A model generated the notes under the pieces. The model had not been told where the DNA came from and did no database searches. It saw only the letters and a program-made list of their open reading frames with translations. From sequence record NC_041917.1: a stretch of DNA of 64,000 nt. One strand, given 5' to 3'. Within the stretch, counting starts at the first letter, position 1. Every line of letters starts with the position of its first letter. This document shows positions 21,884 through 39,054 of this stretch, piece after piece. Both the position numbers and the translations under genes were made by a program.

Positions 21884-22112
21884 TAAATTGTATGAAATTC
21901 TGTTAAAACGGTTCTTTTTTGAAAATTACCCATCAGCAATGAATGTGATTTTACATCATGCAAGTACTTATAGTGATGGGAAAATTGTGGCATCCATTGA
22001 ATTTTGGTTCCCTAACAAACTTGTATTTGTAAATGCTCATATTTTTATTGATGAAGAATATCATTCAATTAATGTTTTTAACACTGATAAACTATTGGAG
22101 TTTGTGGAATGA
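21843..22112 (+). CDS. Hypothetical protein
   Basis: 89-aa ORF coupled to thg1. Confidence 0.5.
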   Translation: MFSKYTKMKNCYPDKLYEILLKRFFFENYPSAMNVILHHASTYSDGKIVASIEFWFPNKLVFVNAHIFIDEEYHSINVFNTDKLLEFVE

Positions 22113-22879
22113 AACTCGGTGATCGTATTAAACTGTACGAAAAAATGGAAACCTCAAACAAATTTATGCCATGGCTTCCGATTTATGCACGTATCGATGG
22201 TCGTTCATTTAGTAAATTTACTAATGGTATGATTAAACCATACGATCCTATTCTTAGTCGTATTATGCAAGAAGTTACTGCGTATCTTGTTAAAGAAACG
22301 AGTGCATGTATTGGTTATACTCAATCGGATGAAATTAGCTTAGTGTTTATGCAAAAATCACCAGAGAGTGATGTTTTCTTTAGTGGTAAGAAGCAGAAAA
22401 TGGTTTCAGTACTTGCAGCATTAGCTACTGCTAAGTTCATTGAACTTGCACTGAAATTCTATCCTGAAGAATGTGCAAAACGTCTTCCAGTGTTTGATTG
22501 TCGTGTATTTCAGGTTCCAAATAAATCTGAGGCGGCGAACTGTTTGATTTGGCGGTCACAAGATGCAATTCGTAACAGTATTCAAATGGCTGGACGTGCA
22601 GTATTCTCGCATAAAGAACTAGATCGTAAAAATCAAAATGATATTCTTGATATGCTTATCAATGAAAAGGGTATCAACTGGAATGAATATCCTAAGTTCT
22701 TTAAAGAAGGTTCATTCTTCCAACGAGTAACTTATATGAAAGAAGTACTTGATGGGGAACCAGTGATGCGGTCTAAAGTTGATGAAGTTATCGTTGATAC
22801 AAAATTTGAAGATCTCAATACTGAAGAAAAGGTTAAACTTATTTTTGGAGATGAGGATGTTCAAAAAACGCAAGAATAA
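22109..22879 (+). CDS. thg1: tRNA(His) guanylyltransferase Thg1-like protein
   Basis: IYARIDGRSFSKFT, GYTQSDEISL, FDCRVF, WRSQDAIRNSI. Confidence 0.92.
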   Translation: MKLGDRIKLYEKMETSNKFMPWLPIYARIDGRSFSKFTNGMIKPYDPILSRIMQEVTAYLVKETSACIGYTQSDEISLVFMQKSPESDVFFSGKKQKMVSVLAALATAKFIELALKFYPEECAKRLPVFDCRVFQVPNKSEAANCLIWRSQDAIRNSIQMAGRAVFSHKELDRKNQNDILDMLINEKGINWNEYPKFFKEGSFFQRVTYMKEVLDGEPVMRSKVDEVIVDTKFEDLNTEEKVKLIFGDEDVQKTQE

Positions 22880-23662: not shown

Positions 23663-23680
23663 ATGAAAATTGAGGTTCAG

Positions 23681-24160
23681 ATGAAACGTTCAGAAGTTTT
23701 ATTTGCAATACTAAGAAAGAGTAAAAAAGTACTTGAAGAATTTGCAGTTTCTAATCGTCAACGTAAATTCATTATTGAAATGAAATATAATTATTCTAAA
23801 CTACAACCAACATTACGCAACATGATGCGTATTATGGCTACTGACATTGAACGTTTTGAACTTTTAAATGAGAAAAATATGAAAGACGTTCTTGAAAATT
23901 TTCATTTAAGTGGTATGGAACGTCCCGAATGTTACATCGAACAACACCCAGCATTGATTGATATTAATACTGGTAAAAAGTTTATTATCAAGCGTGAAGA
24001 AATTATTTCTGGTGATGTTGTTGTATTCAAAGATGCTGAACATAAAGCATTTATTGTAGCATATAATTGTTTAGTATTGGCTAAAGAAAATCAGGAAATC
24101 ATGATTCGAACTCGTGATGAAGAAGAAAAACGCCAATCAGTACTTTCAGAATATCAGTGA
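23681..24160 (+). CDS. Hypothetical protein, paralog family A
   Basis: RKFIIEMKYNYSKLQP...MATDIERF. Confidence 0.65.
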   Translation: MKRSEVLFAILRKSKKVLEEFAVSNRQRKFIIEMKYNYSKLQPTLRNMMRIMATDIERFELLNEKNMKDVLENFHLSGMERPECYIEQHPALIDINTGKKFIIKREEIISGDVVVFKDAEHKAFIVAYNCLVLAKENQEIMIRTRDEEEKRQSVLSEYQ

Positions 24161-24165
24161 GGATA

Positions 24166-24732
24166 ATGATGAATGATATTATGTTGATGATTCTGATGTT
24201 CAGGCAGAATTCAAAACTTTTAAAAGAATATACTAATAGCGATTCGGCTACAGTTCGAAAAGAATATCGAAAAAAATTGATTCAAATAAAGTCGTATCTT
24301 TCGACTATCAGTTCTGAGCAATATAACATTATAAAAGCTATCAGTACTGATTTTGATCGTTTTAACGTTTTCCATATGAAAACAGATTATAATCCCCAAA
24401 TGAGTATGGTAAGATTAAGGTTTTCCTTCATACATCCTTCAACTGGTGAAATATACCGAATTATAGATCGAGCAAATTCAAATGGATACTATCATCCATT
24501 AGTACTACATGATACTAAAATGGATGTTTTCTTTATATTAGACCGAGATACAACTATAGTAGATAATGTTGAAGTTTTTGAAAAAGGTGAACATAATCTA
24601 CTAGTTAAATTTGTTTCAGAATTACAAAAAGCTAAAGAACGTGAAGCACATATTTTACACCAGAAAAAAGTGCGTGAAGAAGAATTAGCCAAGGAACGTA
24701 AAAAAGCAAGCATTCTAGCAAAATATTCATAA
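24166..24732 (+). CDS. Hypothetical protein, paralog family A (diverged)
   Basis: RKKLIQIKSYLS...ISTDFDRF. Confidence 0.6.
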   Translation: MMNDIMLMILMFRQNSKLLKEYTNSDSATVRKEYRKKLIQIKSYLSTISSEQYNIIKAISTDFDRFNVFHMKTDYNPQMSMVRLRFSFIHPSTGEIYRIIDRANSNGYYHPLVLHDTKMDVFFILDRDTTIVDNVEVFEKGEHNLLVKFVSELQKAKEREAHILHQKKVREEELAKERKKASILAKYS

Positions 24733-24740
24733 GGAAAGTA

Positions 24741-25601
24741 ATGGAATATAACGGACAATTCCCGCACCAAACAATTGAATTTAACTCAAGTACAGTCATT
24801 GTGATAAACGGTGACTGTACTGAAGTACTTAAAGAATTGAATGAATTAGGTTTTAAGTTTAACACAACTATAACATCCCCACCATATGCTGAACAACGCA
24901 AAGATGTATACGATAGTATTAGTCCTGCTGATTTTCCATCATGGTATACCGGAATAAGTACTGACATTATGAATGTTCTTCATGATGATGGTTCTTATTT
25001 CTTTAATATTAAAGAACATGTTGACAAAGGTAAGCGTGATGTATATGTATACAAAACAATTATTGATATGTCTAATGTTTATAATTGGAGTGATGAATAT
25101 ATTTGGAATAAAACAAATCCATTCCCAACTGGTGCAAAAACTAGATTAAAAGATGGGTTTGAAAGAATATATCAATTTAATCATACTACGAAATATAAAT
25201 TCTTTCCAGATGAAGTTAAAGTTCAGAGTACTTCAAAATATCTAGAAAGTGAGAAGAAAAGAAAAAACAAAGGTGAACATAACGTTAACAATGGTTCCTC
25301 TATGAACATGACTAAGCGTGTTGCTGAAGACATGGTTAGACCAAGTAACGTTCTAACTTGCAGTACCAGTAATTTAAATATTGGTCATCCAGCAGTATTC
25401 CCTATTGATATTCCCAACTTCTATATAAAATTAACTACTGAGCCTAATGATTGGGTACTAGACCCGTTTGGTGGTTCAGGAACTACCGCACTTAGTTCAA
25501 TACAACTTGGACGAAATTGTGTTCTAATAGAAAAATCTGAACAGTACTATAATCTAATTATAGAACGATTACTACAATATGGTAGGGAGAATTATCAATG
25601 A
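24741..25601 (+). CDS. Beta-class DNA N4-cytosine/N6-adenine methyltransferase
   Basis: TSPPY (motif IV) N-terminal; HPAVFP and VLDPFGGSGTT (motif I) C-terminal. Confidence 0.92.
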   Translation: MEYNGQFPHQTIEFNSSTVIVINGDCTEVLKELNELGFKFNTTITSPPYAEQRKDVYDSISPADFPSWYTGISTDIMNVLHDDGSYFFNIKEHVDKGKRDVYVYKTIIDMSNVYNWSDEYIWNKTNPFPTGAKTRLKDGFERIYQFNHTTKYKFFPDEVKVQSTSKYLESEKKRKNKGEHNVNNGSSMNMTKRVAEDMVRPSNVLTCSTSNLNIGHPAVFPIDIPNFYIKLTTEPNDWVLDPFGGSGTTALSSIQLGRNCVLIEKSEQYYNLIIERLLQYGRENYQ

Positions 25602-25888
25602 GTGATGATAGATTAAATCAACGAATGAATGAAGAAGCAAAAAGTGTTGAAGTTTTTAACTTAACTAAATCTAGTGATGTTTTTAGATTATTGTCTGAAA
25701 CAGTTGAAACGCCAAAAGAGTTAGAACCAGTACTTGCTAAAATTGCTGTAATTGGAGAACTTGGTAAATCTTCATGGTATGAAGTAGTATATCATAACGG
25801 AGATGAATGGTGCTGTTATGCTGGATCAAAAACATTCCAAGATGGTGAACGAGTTTTGGATTGGAAATATTGTACTGATGTTTTATAA
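25598..25888 (+). CDS. Hypothetical protein
   Basis: 96-aa coupled ORF. Confidence 0.65.
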   Translation: MSDDRLNQRMNEEAKSVEVFNLTKSSDVFRLLSETVETPKELEPVLAKIAVIGELGKSSWYEVVYHNGDEWCCYAGSKTFQDGERVLDWKYCTDVL

Positions 25889-25897
25889 GGAAAAAAA

Positions 25898-27142
25898 ATG
25901 AAAAATAATCACCTAGACAATTTAATTGTTAGACACCTTGCAGGTTCACAAGCTTATGGCACAAGTACACCTACATCAGATACTGACTATAGAGGTATTT
26001 TTGTTGCTGATAAAGAATTCATCATTACTCCATTCTTTAAAGTTAATGAAGTTAATGATGCATCCGAAGAAGATACTAAGTATTATGAACTTAACAACTA
26101 TATGCAACTTTATTTGACTGCTAATCCAAATATTCTTGAATCTCTTTGGGTAGATGAGTCTGATATTGTTTTTAAAAATGAAATGTATGATCATCTTCGT
26201 TCCGCTCGTACTGAACTTCTATCCACAAAAATTGCATTTACATACACTGGCTATGCTCATAACCAAGCGAAACGTATGAAAAATCACCACACATGGATGG
26301 AAAAAGAGCGTACTGGTGTTCGTATTTTACAAGAACTAATTGACCAATATCCATGCGAACAAATGGTTCAATGGATTGGCGATTCATTCCCATCTTATAT
26401 TATGAATCTAGTTAATCTAGAAAAAGCACGTGGTGTTTGGATTAAAGGTATTATTGATTTTGAAAAATTTATGCGTAATGCTTCATTGCAAATGCTAAGT
26501 ACTAATCCATTAAAACAATACCACTTTGTAAAATTAGTACATAACTATTTTGACCACCAAGTACTTGATCGTGATTTTAATATTCTAAATTATAATCATG
26601 GATACCAACTTGTTCCTTATGGAGATAACATTTTTGGTCTTGTTGAGCGGGAAGGTTCTAAAACTATTAATGATGATGGTAGTATTCATCGTATTGATAC
26701 TTCAAATCTTACACTACAAGAGGTGAAAGAAACACCTAAATTGATCGTTAAATTCAACAAGGATGAATATGAGAAAAGTTCTGACAATCGTCACAACTAT
26801 CATCATTGGAAGGAAAATCGTAATGAAGCTCGTTCTGAACTAGAACAGTTAAATGGTTATGATACCAAACATGCAATGCACGTTGTTCGTCTACTACGTA
26901 CTGCTGAAGAAGCCTTAGAAACTGGTGAAATTCATGTTAAACGACCTGATGCAGCAGAACTTTTAGCTATCCGAAATGGTGCGTGGAGTTATGATGAAAT
27001 GATGCAGTACTGGAATGAAAAAGACCAGTATATTCGTGAAGTACTATATAAACAATCAGATTTACCAAAAAATCCCGATATTCATAAAGCAGCACAGCTA
27101 CTTATTGAACTTCGTGAAATTCAATGGTATGGGAAAAAATAA
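25898..27142 (+). CDS. Pol-beta-superfamily nucleotidyltransferase (RlaP/PF10127-like) with central insertion
   Basis: LAGSQAYGTSTPTSDTDYRGIF, NPNILESL, YDTKHAMHVVRLL, ELLAIRNG. Confidence 0.85.
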   Translation: MKNNHLDNLIVRHLAGSQAYGTSTPTSDTDYRGIFVADKEFIITPFFKVNEVNDASEEDTKYYELNNYMQLYLTANPNILESLWVDESDIVFKNEMYDHLRSARTELLSTKIAFTYTGYAHNQAKRMKNHHTWMEKERTGVRILQELIDQYPCEQMVQWIGDSFPSYIMNLVNLEKARGVWIKGIIDFEKFMRNASLQMLSTNPLKQYHFVKLVHNYFDHQVLDRDFNILNYNHGYQLVPYGDNIFGLVEREGSKTINDDGSIHRIDTSNLTLQEVKETPKLIVKFNKDEYEKSSDNRHNYHHWKENRNEARSELEQLNGYDTKHAMHVVRLLRTAEEALETGEIHVKRPDAAELLAIRNGAWSYDEMMQYWNEKDQYIREVLYKQSDLPKNPDIHKAAQLLIELREIQWYGKK

Positions 27143-27570
27143 TGAACTTACTAGAACAATTTAAAACTGCACAAGCAGTTTATCTAGGTCTTATCAATGA
27201 ACACGGCTCTGATATTATCGTGGAGCTACTTAACGACATTCAATCTCGTCATCCAAAATTTAATGCAACTACAATTGTAGGTTATACTCCAGAATGGAAT
27301 GATGGCGAAGCATGTGAACATAGTTCTGATATTTGTGTATCATATCTATCAGATGATATTCTTGATAAACTTACTGATATGACCGAATCATTAGGTGAAG
27401 ACTTTGAACTTAATGATATGTCTCGTGAAGAAGCACGTGATATTGAAAAACAACTCAATCTCGCAGATGTAATTTTACAAGAAATCTATGGTACTAATTA
27501 CCAACTTGGTGCAATCTTTGTAGATGGTACTTTTAAACTTTTCCACTCTGAATATGAATGCGGGTACTAA
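27142..27570 (+). CDS. Acidic hypothetical protein, triplicated family B copy 1
   Basis: GYTPEWNDGEACEHSS...EYECGY. Confidence 0.75.
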   Translation: MNLLEQFKTAQAVYLGLINEHGSDIIVELLNDIQSRHPKFNATTIVGYTPEWNDGEACEHSSDICVSYLSDDILDKLTDMTESLGEDFELNDMSREEARDIEKQLNLADVILQEIYGTNYQLGAIFVDGTFKLFHSEYECGY

Positions 27571-27572
27571 TT

Positions 27573-28058
27573 ATGTCAATTTATAATGATTATAAAACAA
27601 AGAAAAACGAATATTTTACTTTTCTAAATTCTAATAAAAACGATATTTTCAATTCAGCAATTGAAGAATTGAAATTACTAATACCTGATGTAAAAACTAT
27701 TGGTATTATTGGATATACACCAGGATTTAATGATGGTGAACCATGTACCCATAGTTCGTATTCATTTTTTGATGATTTCGGGGAATTAATAGAATTATCC
27801 GATTACAATTCTGAAGTACTCTCATGTTTCAACATTCCTGAAGATGTACTAGATGAAGATGAAAGTGATATTTATGATTGGATTAGTGACAATACTTCAC
27901 TAAAATTAACATCAGCAGATCGACAATTGGGTAATGCAATTATGAGTGATTTGGAAGCATTGGCTGAAGATATTTGGTACACAGACTTCATTATCATGGT
28001 TGACCTATCTGAAAATACGCCAGTCGTTAAGCATATTGAATATCAGTGCGGGTACTAA
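27573..28058 (+). CDS. Acidic hypothetical protein, family B copy 2
   Basis: GYTPGFNDGEPCTHSS...EYQCGY. Confidence 0.75.
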   Translation: MSIYNDYKTKKNEYFTFLNSNKNDIFNSAIEELKLLIPDVKTIGIIGYTPGFNDGEPCTHSSYSFFDDFGELIELSDYNSEVLSCFNIPEDVLDEDESDIYDWISDNTSLKLTSADRQLGNAIMSDLEALAEDIWYTDFIIMVDLSENTPVVKHIEYQCGY

Positions 28059-28060
28059 TT

Positions 28061-28534
28061 ATGTTTGATAAAATTACTATTGCTTCAAAGGAATACAAAG
28101 CTGCGATAAAGCAGCTTAAAACAACTTTACGAAATGAATTCAATGATAAATTGAAATCTGACTGCACAGAACTCAAATCCGCGTACCCTAATTTGGATCG
28201 TATTTTTATTCTTGGTAGCACTCCAGAATGGAATGATGGTGAAGAATGTACTCATGACTCATCTGTGTATATTGAAAATACTTCTAATTACAGCGACTGT
28301 AAAGAATATTTTGAGTGTGTATTTGGATGGGATGAACCTGAAATTCCTGAGCATTTAGTAGATTCTAACAAGAATCTATCTGATAATGATGTTACAGAAA
28401 TTAAAAATATTATTCGTCAAAGTGGTTTAGAAAATATTCTAGAAGTAATTTATGAAACTAACTTCAACGTTGTGATCGATTTTACTGGCGACGAAGTACA
28501 AGTGACGGTAGAAGACTATGAATGTGGACACTAA
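28061..28534 (+). CDS. Acidic hypothetical protein, family B copy 3
   Basis: GSTPEWNDGEECTHDS...DYECGH. Confidence 0.75.
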   Translation: MFDKITIASKEYKAAIKQLKTTLRNEFNDKLKSDCTELKSAYPNLDRIFILGSTPEWNDGEECTHDSSVYIENTSNYSDCKEYFECVFGWDEPEIPEHLVDSNKNLSDNDVTEIKNIIRQSGLENILEVIYETNFNVVIDFTGDEVQVTVEDYECGH

Positions 28535-29093
28535 TACATTAAATCCATCAGGAAGTATCGAGTTGAACCTATTTTCATGGGAGATTCCAGAGAATCTTCC
28601 AGAACAAGAATTCAAATATGAAAAACCAAAAAAAGTACTTGAAAATATTCCATCTGAAATGGCTGAATTAGTCCAGAAAATGATTGATGAAGTTCAAAAG
28701 TACGATTCTCGTAGTGTTGTTGTTGATTATAAAGTTAGGAACCTTAAAGCTGGAGATACTGGTTCTAAAATCTATGGGTATCACTTGGACTGTTGTAATG
28801 ACATTCATGATGATTTTGAACCTGAAACCCATATTTTATTTGGTACAGTACAAGGTACTAGTTTTATTATGAATCCAATCAATGTTTCAATATACGACAC
28901 TGTTGATGATGTAATTAAAAACGAAGTACTTTTGGAATCAATATGTGCAACAAATACTGCACATAAGTACACTAGTAAAGTACTTCATAATTGTCCAATT
29001 ATTGAACACGATTGTCAACGAGTTTTGATTCGTGTAACTGCTGGATTCAAAGAAAGGATCAAAAATGCAAAAGCTAAACAACATCAAGTCTGA
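28518..29093 (+). CDS. 2OG-Fe(II) dioxygenase-like protein
   Basis: GYHLD...LHNCP...RVLIRV, resembling HxD...H...R of the DSBH fold. Confidence 0.45.
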   Translation: MNVDTNTLNPSGSIELNLFSWEIPENLPEQEFKYEKPKKVLENIPSEMAELVQKMIDEVQKYDSRSVVVDYKVRNLKAGDTGSKIYGYHLDCCNDIHDDFEPETHILFGTVQGTSFIMNPINVSIYDTVDDVIKNEVLLESICATNTAHKYTSKVLHNCPIIEHDCQRVLIRVTAGFKERIKNAKAKQHQV

Positions 29094-29469
29094 GTTATCA
29101 TCGGTTTATTTGAATGCAAAAGATTCAATTGAACGTTATAATATCCTAAATGAGATGGAAAAATACATGAATGAACTACGTACTAACTTTGTTGAAAAAT
29201 TAAACAAAGCTGAAGAACAAGGTCACGGTGTATTAGCACGACTACAAAATATCGTCGCAGAACATTGTATTCCAGAATATGATGTATCTGAGGTTATGCA
29301 TGATGAAACTGTATCGTTACGTCATGTAATTAATGAATTAGGTCTAGATTCTCTCGATGAAATTGAAATTATAATGTCTATTGAAGAATGTTTTGAGGTC
29401 GAATTGCCTGATTATGATCTAGAACTTTGTCAAACCATTAATGATGTAATTAAACTTATACAAAAATAA
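29065..29469 (+). CDS. Acyl carrier protein domain with N-terminal helical extension
   Basis: ELGLDSLDEIEIIMSIEECFEVELPD...TINDVI (DSL phosphopantetheine site). Confidence 0.85.
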   Translation: MQKLNNIKSELSSVYLNAKDSIERYNILNEMEKYMNELRTNFVEKLNKAEEQGHGVLARLQNIVAEHCIPEYDVSEVMHDETVSLRHVINELGLDSLDEIEIIMSIEECFEVELPDYDLELCQTINDVIKLIQK

Positions 29470-29476
29470 GTACATA

Positions 29477-29503
29477 AAACCCGCTACCAAAGGCGGGTTT
29501 TTT
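29477..29503 (+). terminator. Intrinsic terminator
   Basis: AAACCCGC-N8-GCGGGTTT plus T run. Confidence 0.8.
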
Positions 29504-29544: not shown

Positions 29545-29910
29545 ATGTTAGAATTTATTAAGTTATACAAATGGCCTATCGGGTTAGCAGCATTCTTACT
29601 ATACACAGTACTAATGCTATTTTCTGGCTGGCAAGTACATACCTATTATGTTGGTTATCAACAAAATATTGAACAAAAAATAGAAAAGATAGTAGATAAT
29701 GGAGTTAGAAATTATCAACAAAATCAAGCTAAGGGTCTTGAAGATACAAAATCATTATTAGATAATGCTAGAGTTAATACAATTATTAAAGAACCAACAA
29801 TAATAAACCGACCAATCTATATGCAACAATGTATGGATCAAGCTGGTGTAGATTTGTTGAAACAATATAAATTGGACTCTAAAGCAGCAATAGAAGGAAC
29901 TAAAAAATGA
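29545..29910 (+). CDS. i-spanin (Rz-like)
   Basis: N-terminal TM then coiled periplasmic region; TAAATA upstream; overlaps a lipoprotein gene. Confidence 0.7.
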   Translation: MLEFIKLYKWPIGLAAFLLYTVLMLFSGWQVHTYYVGYQQNIEQKIEKIVDNGVRNYQQNQAKGLEDTKSLLDNARVNTIIKEPTIINRPIYMQQCMDQAGVDLLKQYKLDSKAAIEGTKK

Positions 29911-30218
29911 GAAAAATAAAATTATTCTTAATGGTTCTTGTTCTACTAATGACTGTACTTTTAAGTGCATGTAGTACGATTCCGGTTCAAACTAAACCTA
30001 TTATAGAACAGCAATCATTACTTAAAAAATGTACTACTGATACACCATTACCTACCCAATTTGTCCTTGACGAAAAAGGTCAACCAGTGTATACTGGACA
30101 GGAATTATACAAAACGCTTCGTGACTGGCAGACAGTTTACAATGACTGTGCGAGTACACATAATAAGCTAGTTGATACAATCAACGGGCTACAAGAGATG
30201 AAAGAAGTTAAGAAATAA
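29907..30218 (+). CDS. o-spanin (Rz1-like lipoprotein)
   Basis: Lipobox LLSAC, Pro-rich, YNDCASTHNKLV. Confidence 0.75.
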   Translation: MRKIKLFLMVLVLLMTVLLSACSTIPVQTKPIIEQQSLLKKCTTDTPLPTQFVLDEKGQPVYTGQELYKTLRDWQTVYNDCASTHNKLVDTINGLQEMKEVKK

Positions 30219-36417: not shown

Positions 36418-36937
36418 ATCAGATTTTGAACGAATTTATCAAGATTGTGAAACTATTGAAGAATGGCATACCCGTAGTACACCACTCATCAATGAAATTA
36501 AAACGACTTCAACTGAACTTGAGCTTGATGAATTATCATCGTGGTTACAAGTTATGTATCAACGTTTGTCATTGAAACAACCAGTACAACATGAATTTTA
36601 TAAAGAAGTAAATTCTGTAAAAACTTCTTATTGTACTATTCATATGGCTGGTGATTATGATACAGCAGTTTCACATGCACGTGAATATACGTTCAATCAT
36701 GGGGCATGTTTCCAAATCACTAAATGCGATTATGTATATACTGGCGGTAAAGAATCTGGAATTACTGCTCGTGTATTATGTTATCCTCGCTTCCCAAAAA
36801 CTGACCGTCAGTTACTTGATGAAGCTAAAGAGTTTGCATTTGGTTTAGCTGAAAAACTTTGTCAAAAGAGCTTTACAATTGAAACCAGTACTGATACAAT
36901 ATATTTCCAAAGCAATAAGAATTTACATGGGAAATAA
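36404..36937 (+). CDS. Hypothetical phage protein
   Basis: 177 aa; YVYTGGKESG...YPRFP. Confidence 0.7.
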   Translation: MSVSKSDFERIYQDCETIEEWHTRSTPLINEIKTTSTELELDELSSWLQVMYQRLSLKQPVQHEFYKEVNSVKTSYCTIHMAGDYDTAVSHAREYTFNHGACFQITKCDYVYTGGKESGITARVLCYPRFPKTDRQLLDEAKEFAFGLAEKLCQKSFTIETSTDTIYFQSNKNLHGK

Positions 36938-36938
36938 T

Positions 36939-37259
36939 ATGAAACATCCATATGACGGTGAAATAAAATCATGTCCATTTTGTGGACATGAACCATTACG
37001 TGATAATTTGATTGATAGTTTACATCCAACTGGTATGGAATGGTTTAAATGCCCATTGTTAGATATTCAATTGTACGGAGAAGATTTGGACTGTACTCAT
37101 AGTGCAATCAATCCAGAAGTATATGTATTGAAACATGATGTTACTGAACGTGGAAAGTTCTGGACATTTAGTTGTTTAGAATCTGAAGGTGGATGTAGTT
37201 GTACTTTTTTTGGTACTTCTATTGATGATGTAATGAATAAGTGGAACAAGAGGATTTAA
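36939..37259 (+). CDS. Lar-like (restriction alleviation family) Zn-finger protein
   Basis: IKSCPFCG...GGCSC...KWNKR. Confidence 0.5.
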   Translation: MKHPYDGEIKSCPFCGHEPLRDNLIDSLHPTGMEWFKCPLLDIQLYGEDLDCTHSAINPEVYVLKHDVTERGKFWTFSCLESEGGCSCTFFGTSIDDVMNKWNKRI

Positions 37260-37260
37260 C

Positions 37261-37395
37261 ATGAAATCAGGATTAATTATACTAGCAGGACTTGTACTAT
37301 GTGGAGTAGGTGCATTTGGTTATTTTAAAGATCTTGATTTATGGGGTGCATGGGTAATTGTTGGTGGTTTAATAGTTTATTCACAGGTTGATTAA
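37261..37395 (+). CDS. Small membrane protein (44 aa)
   Basis: GAGG RBS; two hydrophobic segments. Confidence 0.55.
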   Translation: MKSGLIILAGLVLCGVGAFGYFKDLDLWGAWVIVGGLIVYSQVD

Positions 37396-37794: not shown

Positions 37795-39054
37795 ATGAAA
37801 ATGGCAGAACTGATTAAAGAAGGTCGTAAACTGGTTACCATTCGCCGCATTAATGCGATTAACCCGATTCCAAATGCTGATGCAATTGAAGTTGCAACAG
37901 TTGATGGCTGGAATGTTGTCACTAAAAAAGGTGAATTCTCTGAAACCAATTTTTGCGTATTCTTTGAAATTGATTCATTCCTACCAGCAGATAACCCAAT
38001 TTTTGGTTTCCTTCTGCGTAATGGAACCAAAACTGATGAAGCGGGTGTAGAGCGTATTCGCCTCCGTACTGTAAAACTTCGTCAGCAAATTTCTCAAGGG
38101 CTGGCACTTCCTATTGATATTATCAATAAAGATATGATCAATGCATTTGCTGAAGCTATTGGTATTAAAAGTACTGATGATTTTGAACGTTTTTCTGAAG
38201 TACTCCGTACTCTTGAAGAAAGCCGTGATGGTATTGAACAGTTCTTCAATGTAACTAAGTACGAGCGTCCAGATGAGCGTCAGGGTGGTGGTGCAAACCG
38301 TGCAAAAACAGCAGGTAACTTCCCTCTGGTAATTCCAAAAACTGATGAAGACCGTGTTCAGAATATTTTTGGAAAATTCAGTCAAACTATGAAGGGTGTT
38401 CCATTCCGCAAATCTTTAAAACTTGATGGCTCTAGTCAGACTATTGCATATTTCAATAATCCAGATTTCTTTGTGGATAAAGTTGATGAAGAAGTTGTAG
38501 AATGGAATGAAGAAACCCAAGAACTGACAGTTGTTGAAGTTAAACCATATCCGTTCCAGTGGGAAAGTGCACAGATTGTTGTTTGCTCTCGCAACCTTGC
38601 ATTGAAGTTTGATGAATCTGCGGCATTCTGGAAAGCAGCATTGAAAGATGATATTCCAGCACGTCTTAAAAAGTACTGTGAAGATCATGAACGTCAGCTT
38701 GCATTGCAGGGTGAATGTATGGGACCTGGTATTCAAGGCAACCGTGAAGGTTTATCTGAACATGAGTTCTTCTGCTTCCGTATTTGGGATGTAGATGCAC
38801 AGAATTTCCTTGATGATGCAGAGTTCTTTGAAGTAACTGCTATTCTTGGCATCAATGTTGTTCCACAGGGTGATATTGTATATTTCTTTGATGTATACAG
38901 TACTATTCAGGAAGCACTTAATAGTGCAGAACATGCAAGTATTGTTCATCCTATTGCAGAAGGTGACGTATACAAAAGTACTGAAAAGGTGAATGGACAA
39001 ACTATCCACTTTAAAGTAATTAACAATAAATTCCTAATGAAATGTGAAGACTAA
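37795..39054 (+). CDS. ATP-dependent RNA ligase, DRB0094/Rnl2-like family
   Basis: IPNADAIEVATVDGW, FFEIDSFLP, KTDEDRVQN, KLDGSS (motif I), QGECMGPGIQGN, EGDV, FKVINN. Confidence 0.9.
   Translation: MKMAELIKEGRKLVTIRRINAINPIPNADAIEVATVDGWNVVTKKGEFSETNFCVFFEIDSFLPADNPIFGFLLRNGTKTDEAGVERIRLRTVKLRQQISQGLALPIDIINKDMINAFAEAIGIKSTDDFERFSEVLRTLEESRDGIEQFFNVTKYERPDERQGGGANRAKTAGNFPLVIPKTDEDRVQNIFGKFSQTMKGVPFRKSLKLDGSSQTIAYFNNPDFFVDKVDEEVVEWNEETQELTVVEVKPYPFQWESAQIVVCSRNLALKFDESAAFWKAALKDDIPARLKKYCEDHERQLALQGECMGPGIQGNREGLSEHEFFCFRIWDVDAQNFLDDAEFFEVTAILGINVVPQGDIVYFFDVYSTIQEALNSAEHASIVHPIAEGDVYKSTEKVNGQTIHFKVINNKFLMKCED

Follow-up and report, generated by a model that had tools for sequence, protein, structure and literature searches.

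The DNA analysed here (the window) is a stretch of 64,000 nucleotides from sequence record NC_041917.1. It is 100% identical to the genome of Serratia phage BF (Eneladusvirus, 357 kb), a RaK2-like jumbo phage, with window position 25898 corresponding to position 87898 of the record, and the same region of six Erwinia amylovora phages displays 99.6-99.8% identity to it. Between 25898 and 29469 the open reading frame (ORF) listing places six same-strand genes with overlapping ends. They encode a nucleotidyltransferase (NTase), three paralogous small acidic Cys/His proteins, a protein of 191 amino acids (aa) with the fold of Fe(II)/2-oxoglutarate (2OG) oxygenases, and a protein resembling acyl carrier proteins (ACPs). 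An original prediction, made from the letters alone, had described a coupled run of six genes that ends at a terminator and comprises a PF10127-like NTase, three paralogs with the motif TP.[WF]NDGE.C.H, a 2OG-oxygenase-like HxD...H...R protein and an ACP with an intact DSL site. All of these elements are present. The prediction had furthermore read the six genes as one pathway in which a moiety is loaded onto the ACP and tailored there, for which we find no support, so that the earlier interpretation is partly supported. What the comparison with other phages strongly supports is a functional link between one subtype of the small proteins and the oxygenase.

The three paralogs, all on the plus strand, are located at 27124-27570 (paralog A; RefSeq start 27142), 27558-28058 (B, the middle copy) and 28046-28534 (C; RefSeq start 28061), the last directly upstream of the oxygenase gene. 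They match phrog_10375 (E 3.8e-51, 3.1e-51 and 1.2e-53 for A, B and C) and one another (phmmer, 1e-10 to 1e-14), share the motifs G-x-T-P-x-[WF]-N-D-G-E-x-C-x-H and, at the C-terminus, Y-x-C-G-[YH], and are strongly acidic, with isoelectric points (pI) of 4.0-4.4 (4.2, 4.1 and 4.4 for A, B and C). All RaK2-like phages retain the ortholog of paralog A in first position, while the middle paralog is present in 0-2 copies in relatives; the first- and last-position paralogs are old orthologs. A profile of the three proteins recovers 674 clusters at 50% identity among 1.8 billion proteins. The family is nearly all viral (92-96% viruses among the ESM Atlas clusters), and a search of 185,579 species genomes of bacteria and archaea gave only seven loci. 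Alignment to the profile of the small proteins from loci with and without the oxygenase distinguishes two subtypes: the CG-type, which includes all three BF paralogs and is characterised by G57, H70, T138 and the ending Y[DE]CG[YH], and the phrog_9564-like HD-type with Q57, F70 and the ending EYxH[DE]. Many small-protein genes stand without an oxygenase among unrelated neighbours. Those next to HD-type genes are mixed and include RuvC, a kinase, ferritin, NUDIX and DUF6915 (HD-type loci L023, L025, L027, L030, L031, L033, L036-L039, L041-L043, L045-L047, L071, L073 and L075).

The AlphaFold2 (AF2) model of paralog C has a predicted local distance difference test (pLDDT) score of 92.8 and consists of a 40-residue N-terminal helix, a four-stranded sheet and short helices. 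Compared with the PDB it shows no fold match (best Z score 4.3), and Foldseek searches of the PDB, VIA-wide and BFVD returned the protein's own family only. Weak matches such as EsaG/DUF600 (Z 4.0) were discarded as noise, and an identity as a Tad/Acb-like defence or anti-defence sponge was likewise rejected, as such structures are present in the PDB and yet remained unmatched. For paralogs and oxygenase alike, Pfam, NCBIfam and PADLOC yielded nothing meaningful and profile searches of PDB sequences were blank; gene fusions or named members were found for neither family. The ESM Atlas lists one structural neighbour of 317 aa. C68, H70 and C160, all in well-ordered parts of the model, would be a likely metal site.

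The oxygenase gene (28518-29093, plus strand) matches phrog_21561 and, more weakly, phrog_1843, and its product has no match to a curated 2OG family in Pfam, NCBIfam or PDB sequences. Its identification rests on the fold and on a small set of residues. When the AF2 model (pLDDT 92.4) was compared with 48,161 PDB representatives, 2OG/Fe(II) oxygenases filled the first 13 places and 49 of the first 50, the highest Z score being 9.5 in this search and 9.8 in a Foldseek-seeded comparison. Structural neighbours include SnoK (Z 9.5), PHD2 (9.5), the Pseudomonas EF-Tu prolyl hydroxylase (4iw3, 9.0) and AlkB homologs (7-8). H89-x-D91, H157 and R168 do not vary among 24 close homologs, nor among 12 homologs reaching down to 20% identity, and R172 is likewise invariant in homologs down to this level. 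H89, D91 and H157 are putative iron ligands and R168 is a putative 2OG-binding residue; their spacing fits the usual HxD...H...R pattern, the equivalent residues of PHD2 being H313, D315, H374 and R383. On the strength of the model the protein can confidently be assigned to the Fe(II)/2OG oxygenase superfamily with its double-stranded beta-helix fold.

Among known enzymes, the BF protein most resembles prolyl-4-hydroxylase/PhyH-type oxygenases (PHD2, the Pseudomonas prolyl-4-hydroxylase with EF-Tu, SnoK), both in fold (Z 9.0-9.8 over 140-166 residues) and in the HxD...H triad, with an Arg 11 residues past the distal His. It differs from them in the absence of any Pfam or PDB sequence match, in its very small size and in the small partner that is always co-encoded. 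A 395-kb phage encodes a second, distantly related oxygenase-like protein of 231 aa, which the profile matches with E 6.5e-8 (L082, record G004:C1:163265-166552); no small-protein gene lies within the 3.3 kb fetched around it.

The distribution of the two families was followed in 41 viral loci sampled via the small-protein profile and eight sampled via the oxygenase profile, supplemented by exact-protein look-ups, and all ORFs of the fetched loci were scanned with a hidden Markov model (HMM) of each family. A gene of the small-protein family is located directly upstream of the oxygenase homolog, on the same strand, in 46 of 46 sampled loci, and the pair overlaps or is separated by no more than 64 nucleotides in each of them. 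These loci comprise 33 unique oxygenase sequences in seven clusters at 50% identity. They stem from RaK2-like phages, Acinetobacter phage TaPaz, ~88-kb phages, 140-176-kb phages and the 395-kb phage named above, and also from alphaproteobacterial prophages (Agrobacterium, Ancylobacter). Adjacency and orientation in this near-perfect pairing across unrelated phages persist at 20-30% protein identity and amid otherwise different neighbours, and the number of paralogs per oxygenase ranges from one to four.

The pairing is confined to one subtype. Only CG-type genes are found directly upstream of the oxygenase; an HD-type gene occupies this position in none of the approximately 16 HD-only lineages, and the iterated oxygenase HMM detected no homologs beside HD-type genes. 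In one pair-bearing locus (L070) an HD-type copy lies 4 kb from the pair, and another (L063) possesses a second copy with an atypical end. CG-type genes without a nearby oxygenase derive from incomplete records, or from complete genomes (G002, G004) in which the oxygenase is encoded elsewhere. A lineage-level 2x2 table of subtype against oxygenase gives a Fisher p of ~3e-7, a value that is indicative only, as the lineages are not independent. In a complete 176-kb phage (L081, record G002:C1:10896-14393, and L029) the oxygenase adjoins no more than a fragment (70 aa) of a small-protein gene; an intact CG-type copy is located ~27 kb away across the genome ends. In the literature searched we found no description of the pair.

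We tentatively interpret the pair as an enzyme that acts on the small protein. The small proteins would be the working effectors, probably metalloproteins using C68, H70 and C160. The oxygenase would be an accessory enzyme dedicated to them, oxidising (hydroxylating) either the small proteins themselves or whatever is bound to them, probably in the course of phage RNA repair or host takeover. The two proteins would also interact physically. We prefer the small protein as the modified effector because its scaffold works alone in the HD-type, because several paralogs share one enzyme, and because the residues that distinguish the paired subtype are concentrated at H70 and the C-terminus.

A different division of labour is nearly as likely. 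In it, the CG-type protein would be an obligatory subunit that activates or targets the oxygenase, directing it to a macromolecule of the host or the phage, for example tRNA or a translation factor or ribosomal protein, with different paralogs setting different targets. That an oxygenase without a small protein was never seen in the 46 loci is consistent with such an adaptor, as are the variable number of paralogs, the presence of the EF-Tu prolyl hydroxylase among the structural neighbours and the tRNA and RNA-repair genes nearby. A precedent is provided by 5mYOX, a phage thymine dioxygenase that depends on a ParB partner (PMC13229309). Both systems combine a phage 2OG dioxygenase with a co-encoded non-catalytic partner; however, 5mYOX is a TET/JBP-type enzyme with a ParB-fold partner and a DNA substrate, whereas the BF partner matches no known fold and the dependence on it is deduced from gene linkage only. 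The adaptor model is at odds with the HD-type relatives, which work alone and thereby suggest a function of the scaffold itself, and a pI near 4 speaks against direct RNA binding.

The placement of the pair in RNA repair is a lead and not a finding. Thg1 lies directly downstream of the pair in two contig types, and in other lineages the neighbours are HD_4, RtcB and Metallophos; RlaP (PF10127) and PTH2; or a TilS-like PP-loop protein, Macro and Metallophos. RlaP-like genes also occur 2-3 kb from lone small-protein genes.

Several observations weigh against the oxygenase as a modifier of the small protein in an RNA-repair setting. Approximately half of the lineages have the pair among genes of replication and nucleotide metabolism. 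Among the structural neighbours, protein prolyl hydroxylases score within 1 Z unit of small-molecule oxygenases, so that no substrate class can be read from the fold. The conserved Cys and His residues are situated in a well-ordered region of the model (block pLDDT >90), which is more in keeping with a metal site than with an exposed target of hydroxylation, and C160 is lost from the oxygenase-adjacent copy in some multi-copy arrays. Pairwise identities of the two proteins show no co-variation over the seven deep clusters (Spearman 0.27, not significant). The pairing may also derive in part from one ancient acquisition that was passed on vertically.

Taken to its extreme, this argument would make the adjacency an inherited order of functionally unrelated accessory genes, without any link even within the pair. 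Phage accessory regions are mosaic, and the missing co-variation signal and the mere seven deep clusters, hence few independent events, would agree with such an origin. We nevertheless regard it as very unlikely, because adjacency and orientation survive such low protein identity amid changing neighbours, because the link is specific to the CG-type, and because the spacing is tight in every sampled locus.

The first gene of the run (25898-27142, plus strand) encodes a 414-aa Pol-beta NTase of the RlaP family (PF10127, phrog_388), for which nucleotide addition to RNA 3' ends during repair is predicted. The match to PF10127 covers residues 8-132 (E 7.5e-17, 62.3 bits against a cut-off of 23) and that to phrog_388 the full length (E 1.4e-78). 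The Pol-beta motif hG[GS]x9-13D[hx][DE] is present as A-G-S ... S-D-T-D at residues 15-30; a comparison with solved structures gave no sequence match. The name RlaP refers to the linkage of PF10127 proteins with RNA ligases. In Pseudomonas, two members of the family extend damaged RNAs by one or two nucleotides at the 3'-OH and are required for repaired tRNA to regain its function (bioRxiv 10.64898/2025.12.29.696909). In a survey of jumbo phages RlaP and Thg1 are counted among the phage RNA-repair enzymes (PMC7824862).

The BF genome likewise holds further genes of this kind. Thg1 is located 3 kb upstream (window about 22109-22879), an Rnl2-type ligase (PF09414) at window 38419-39021 (record 100419-101021), ~9 kb away, and an Rnl1-type ligase (PF09511) at record 36730-37356, ~50 kb away; RtcB was not found in the genome. 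BF carries a broad RNA-repair kit of RlaP, Thg1, Rnl1 and Rnl2. The BF NTase agrees with the RlaP proteins of P. fluorescens and P. aeruginosa and with NrdC.11 of T4 in a Pfam match well over the cut-off and in the Pol-beta motif, and its genome also contains RNA ligases and Thg1, as in jumbo phages (PMC7824862). It differs in its length, with a long C-terminal region typical of the phage phrog_388, and in the lack of an adjoining ligase gene, the Rnl2 gene being ~9 kb off. Its domain and motif mark it as a Pol-beta RlaP enzyme and not as an ANL-type adenylating enzyme for carrier-protein loading. The role of adenylating enzyme in a carrier pathway, which the original prediction had implied for the NTase, does not agree with the action of RlaP on RNA 3' ends.

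The last gene of the run (29065-29469, plus strand) encodes the ACP-like protein, which consists of a helical N-terminal extension of ~55 aa and a PP-binding domain with the DSL serine (PF00550, E 2e-9, 38 bits against a cut-off of 20.8). It remains below every NCBIfam ACP cut-off (best 48.9 bits against 92), without an equivalog-level AcpP match. With AcpP-type ACPs it shares its acidic character, the PP-binding domain and the DSL serine in helix II, but it differs from them in the N-terminal extension and the sub-cut-off NCBIfam scores, and furthermore in its extreme divergence among close phages, the loss of the serine in RaK2 and K64-1 and its detection in virions. Between BF and fHe-Yen9-04 (L010 7987-8436), a phage of the same genus, the ACP is only 37% identical, while its flanks reach 77-93% (NTase 93%, oxygenase 90%, paralogs 77-82%). 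This divergence suggests that alleles were replaced or that diversifying selection is strong. The copy on a metagenomic contig (L007) is 72% identical to that of BF. The DSL serine is retained in 13 of the 14 RaK2-like ACP variants. In K64-1 (L003 4575-4982), and equally in RaK2 (L015), D-T-W replaces D-S-L and no Pfam PP-binding match is obtained, so that the carrier serine has apparently been lost in Alcyoneusvirus. The ACP-like protein is lineage-specific and evolves very fast.

A 15.6-kDa 'putative acyl carrier protein' was detected with 3-5 peptides by liquid chromatography-tandem mass spectrometry of the virions of three Erwinia phages (PMC7760394, Table S6). The ACP of these three phages is identical to the BF protein. 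Its detection may reflect packaging or, alternatively, carry-over of an abundant acidic protein.

The six genes could nonetheless form one pathway, as the original prediction proposed: the NTase would activate a moiety, the ACP carry it and the oxygenase tailor it, and it would then be passed on to DNA, RNA or a protein; the paralogs would assist or serve as targets. The order of NTase, two to four paralogs, oxygenase-like gene, a gene in the ACP position, terminator and spanins is kept among RaK2-like phages (K64-1/RaK2, Munch, CBB, GAP32, XbC2, fHe-Yen9 and many ~360-kb metagenomic contigs), and this order in all RaK2-like genera, together with the translational coupling and the prevalence of the DSL serine, would be expected of a pathway. 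However, RaK2-like genomes are collinear over long distances, so that the shared order is in itself weak evidence of function, and the synteny of the six genes is confined to this one lineage. Outside it, PF00550 is present in one of ten other pair-bearing records (six of the ten are at least 98% complete), a short ACP 6.4 kb from the pair in an unrelated prophage lineage that can be counted in favour of the pathway. RlaP (PF10127) is present in two of eight other pair-bearing records, 7 and 19 kb from the pair. The absence of the ACP from 9/10 and of RlaP from 6/8 of these records argues against the pathway, and the former indicates that the module of small protein and oxygenase does not require the ACP. 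The gene-neighbourhood conservation that the original prediction looked to is accordingly found for the paralogs and the oxygenase, but not for the NTase and the ACP, which keep their places only within the RaK2-like lineage.

The biochemistry implied by the individual genes leads in the same direction. The ACP gene is the sole PP-binding gene of the 357-kb BF genome, from which a phosphopantetheinyl transferase (PPTase, PF01648) and an AMP-binding/ANL adenylating enzyme (PF00501) are absent; host AcpS could substitute for the missing phage PPTase. RlaP enzymes work on the RNA 3'-OH, and the carrier serine is replaced in RaK2 and K64-1. In favour of the pathway, the best Foldseek match of the oxygenase is the CurA halogenase, which acts on ACP-bound substrates. 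The carrier-protein-dependent 2OG halogenases and hydroxylases CurA Hal and SyrB2 have the same fold as the BF protein, and in BF the ACP gene begins before the oxygenase gene ends. In contrast to these enzymes, the BF oxygenase possesses HxD in place of the halogenase HxA/G and so is not a halogenase; moreover its ACP is not co-conserved and no loading enzymes were found. In view of these points we consider a single six-gene pathway improbable.

The limits of the run are themselves partly a matter of definition. According to the starts of the ORF list, successive genes overlap by 19, 13, 13, 17 and 29 nucleotides, while the RefSeq starts of paralogs A and C turn two of these junctions into a 1-nucleotide overlap and a 2-nucleotide gap. 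Downstream, the run is closed by an intrinsic terminator on the plus strand at 29476-29501, a 10-bp hairpin followed by a U run (free energy -15.3 kcal/mol, z -3.9), which a consensus terminator scanner had missed. Upstream, no terminator was found back to ~23.4 kb. An N6/N4 DNA methyltransferase gene outside the core module (24741-25601, plus strand; PF01555, E 2.1e-37) overlaps by four nucleotides a gene for a 96-aa protein (25598-25888, plus strand; phrog_23756), which lies between methyltransferase and NTase, is syntenic in most BF-like relatives and is separated from the NTase gene by a gap of nine nucleotides. Both genes are coupled in the same way as the six, and the six-gene limit is arbitrary. 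Gene overlap is the norm throughout the BF genome, and in Salmonella phage Munch the annotated terminators enclose ten genes.

Just upstream in the same coupled run, BF gp149 and gp150 (23663-24160 and 24157-24732) are tandem paralogs with 25% identity (E 2e-8). Directly past the terminator a spanin pair follows, with a Rz-like i-spanin (phrog_1152) at 29545-29910 and an o-spanin with an L-S-A-C lipobox at 29907-30218. An earlier paper had speculated that the ACP is linked to the maturation of the lipoprotein spanin.

Taken together, we regard the run in RaK2-like jumbo phages as three co-transcribed units, an explanation to which we assign a probability slightly above one half (roughly 0.55). 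In the first, the RlaP NTase would restore nucleotides at damaged RNA or tRNA 3' ends, together with Thg1, Rnl1 and Rnl2. The second, one to four CG-type small proteins with one Fe(II)/2OG oxygenase, would be a conserved module. The third would be the lineage-specific, rapidly evolving ACP-like protein, dispensable for the module and maybe virion-associated. A more specific scheme, which we think unlikely, is that the oxygenase turns the cluster of Cys, His and C-terminal aromatic residues in the CG-type proteins into an oxidised residue or a protein-derived cofactor. In this way it would mature a novel class of small phage metalloproteins, effectors against host defences that target tRNA or translation, the fast-evolving ACP-like protein of RaK2-like phages being an additional, virion-delivered partner.

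The analysis separates what looked like a plausible pathway into known components and unknown ones. It provides a compact experimental target, a phage-specific family of small proteins of which one subtype is strictly paired with a new minimal 2OG oxygenase family, and the fast-diverging, virion-detected ACP-like protein becomes a separate oddity. Partner-dependent phage 2OG oxygenases have only recently been described, for DNA modification, so that a second, unrelated case would widen this theme, and the RNA-repair genes that repeatedly lie near the pair suggest that it takes part in the conflict about the host's tRNA and translation.

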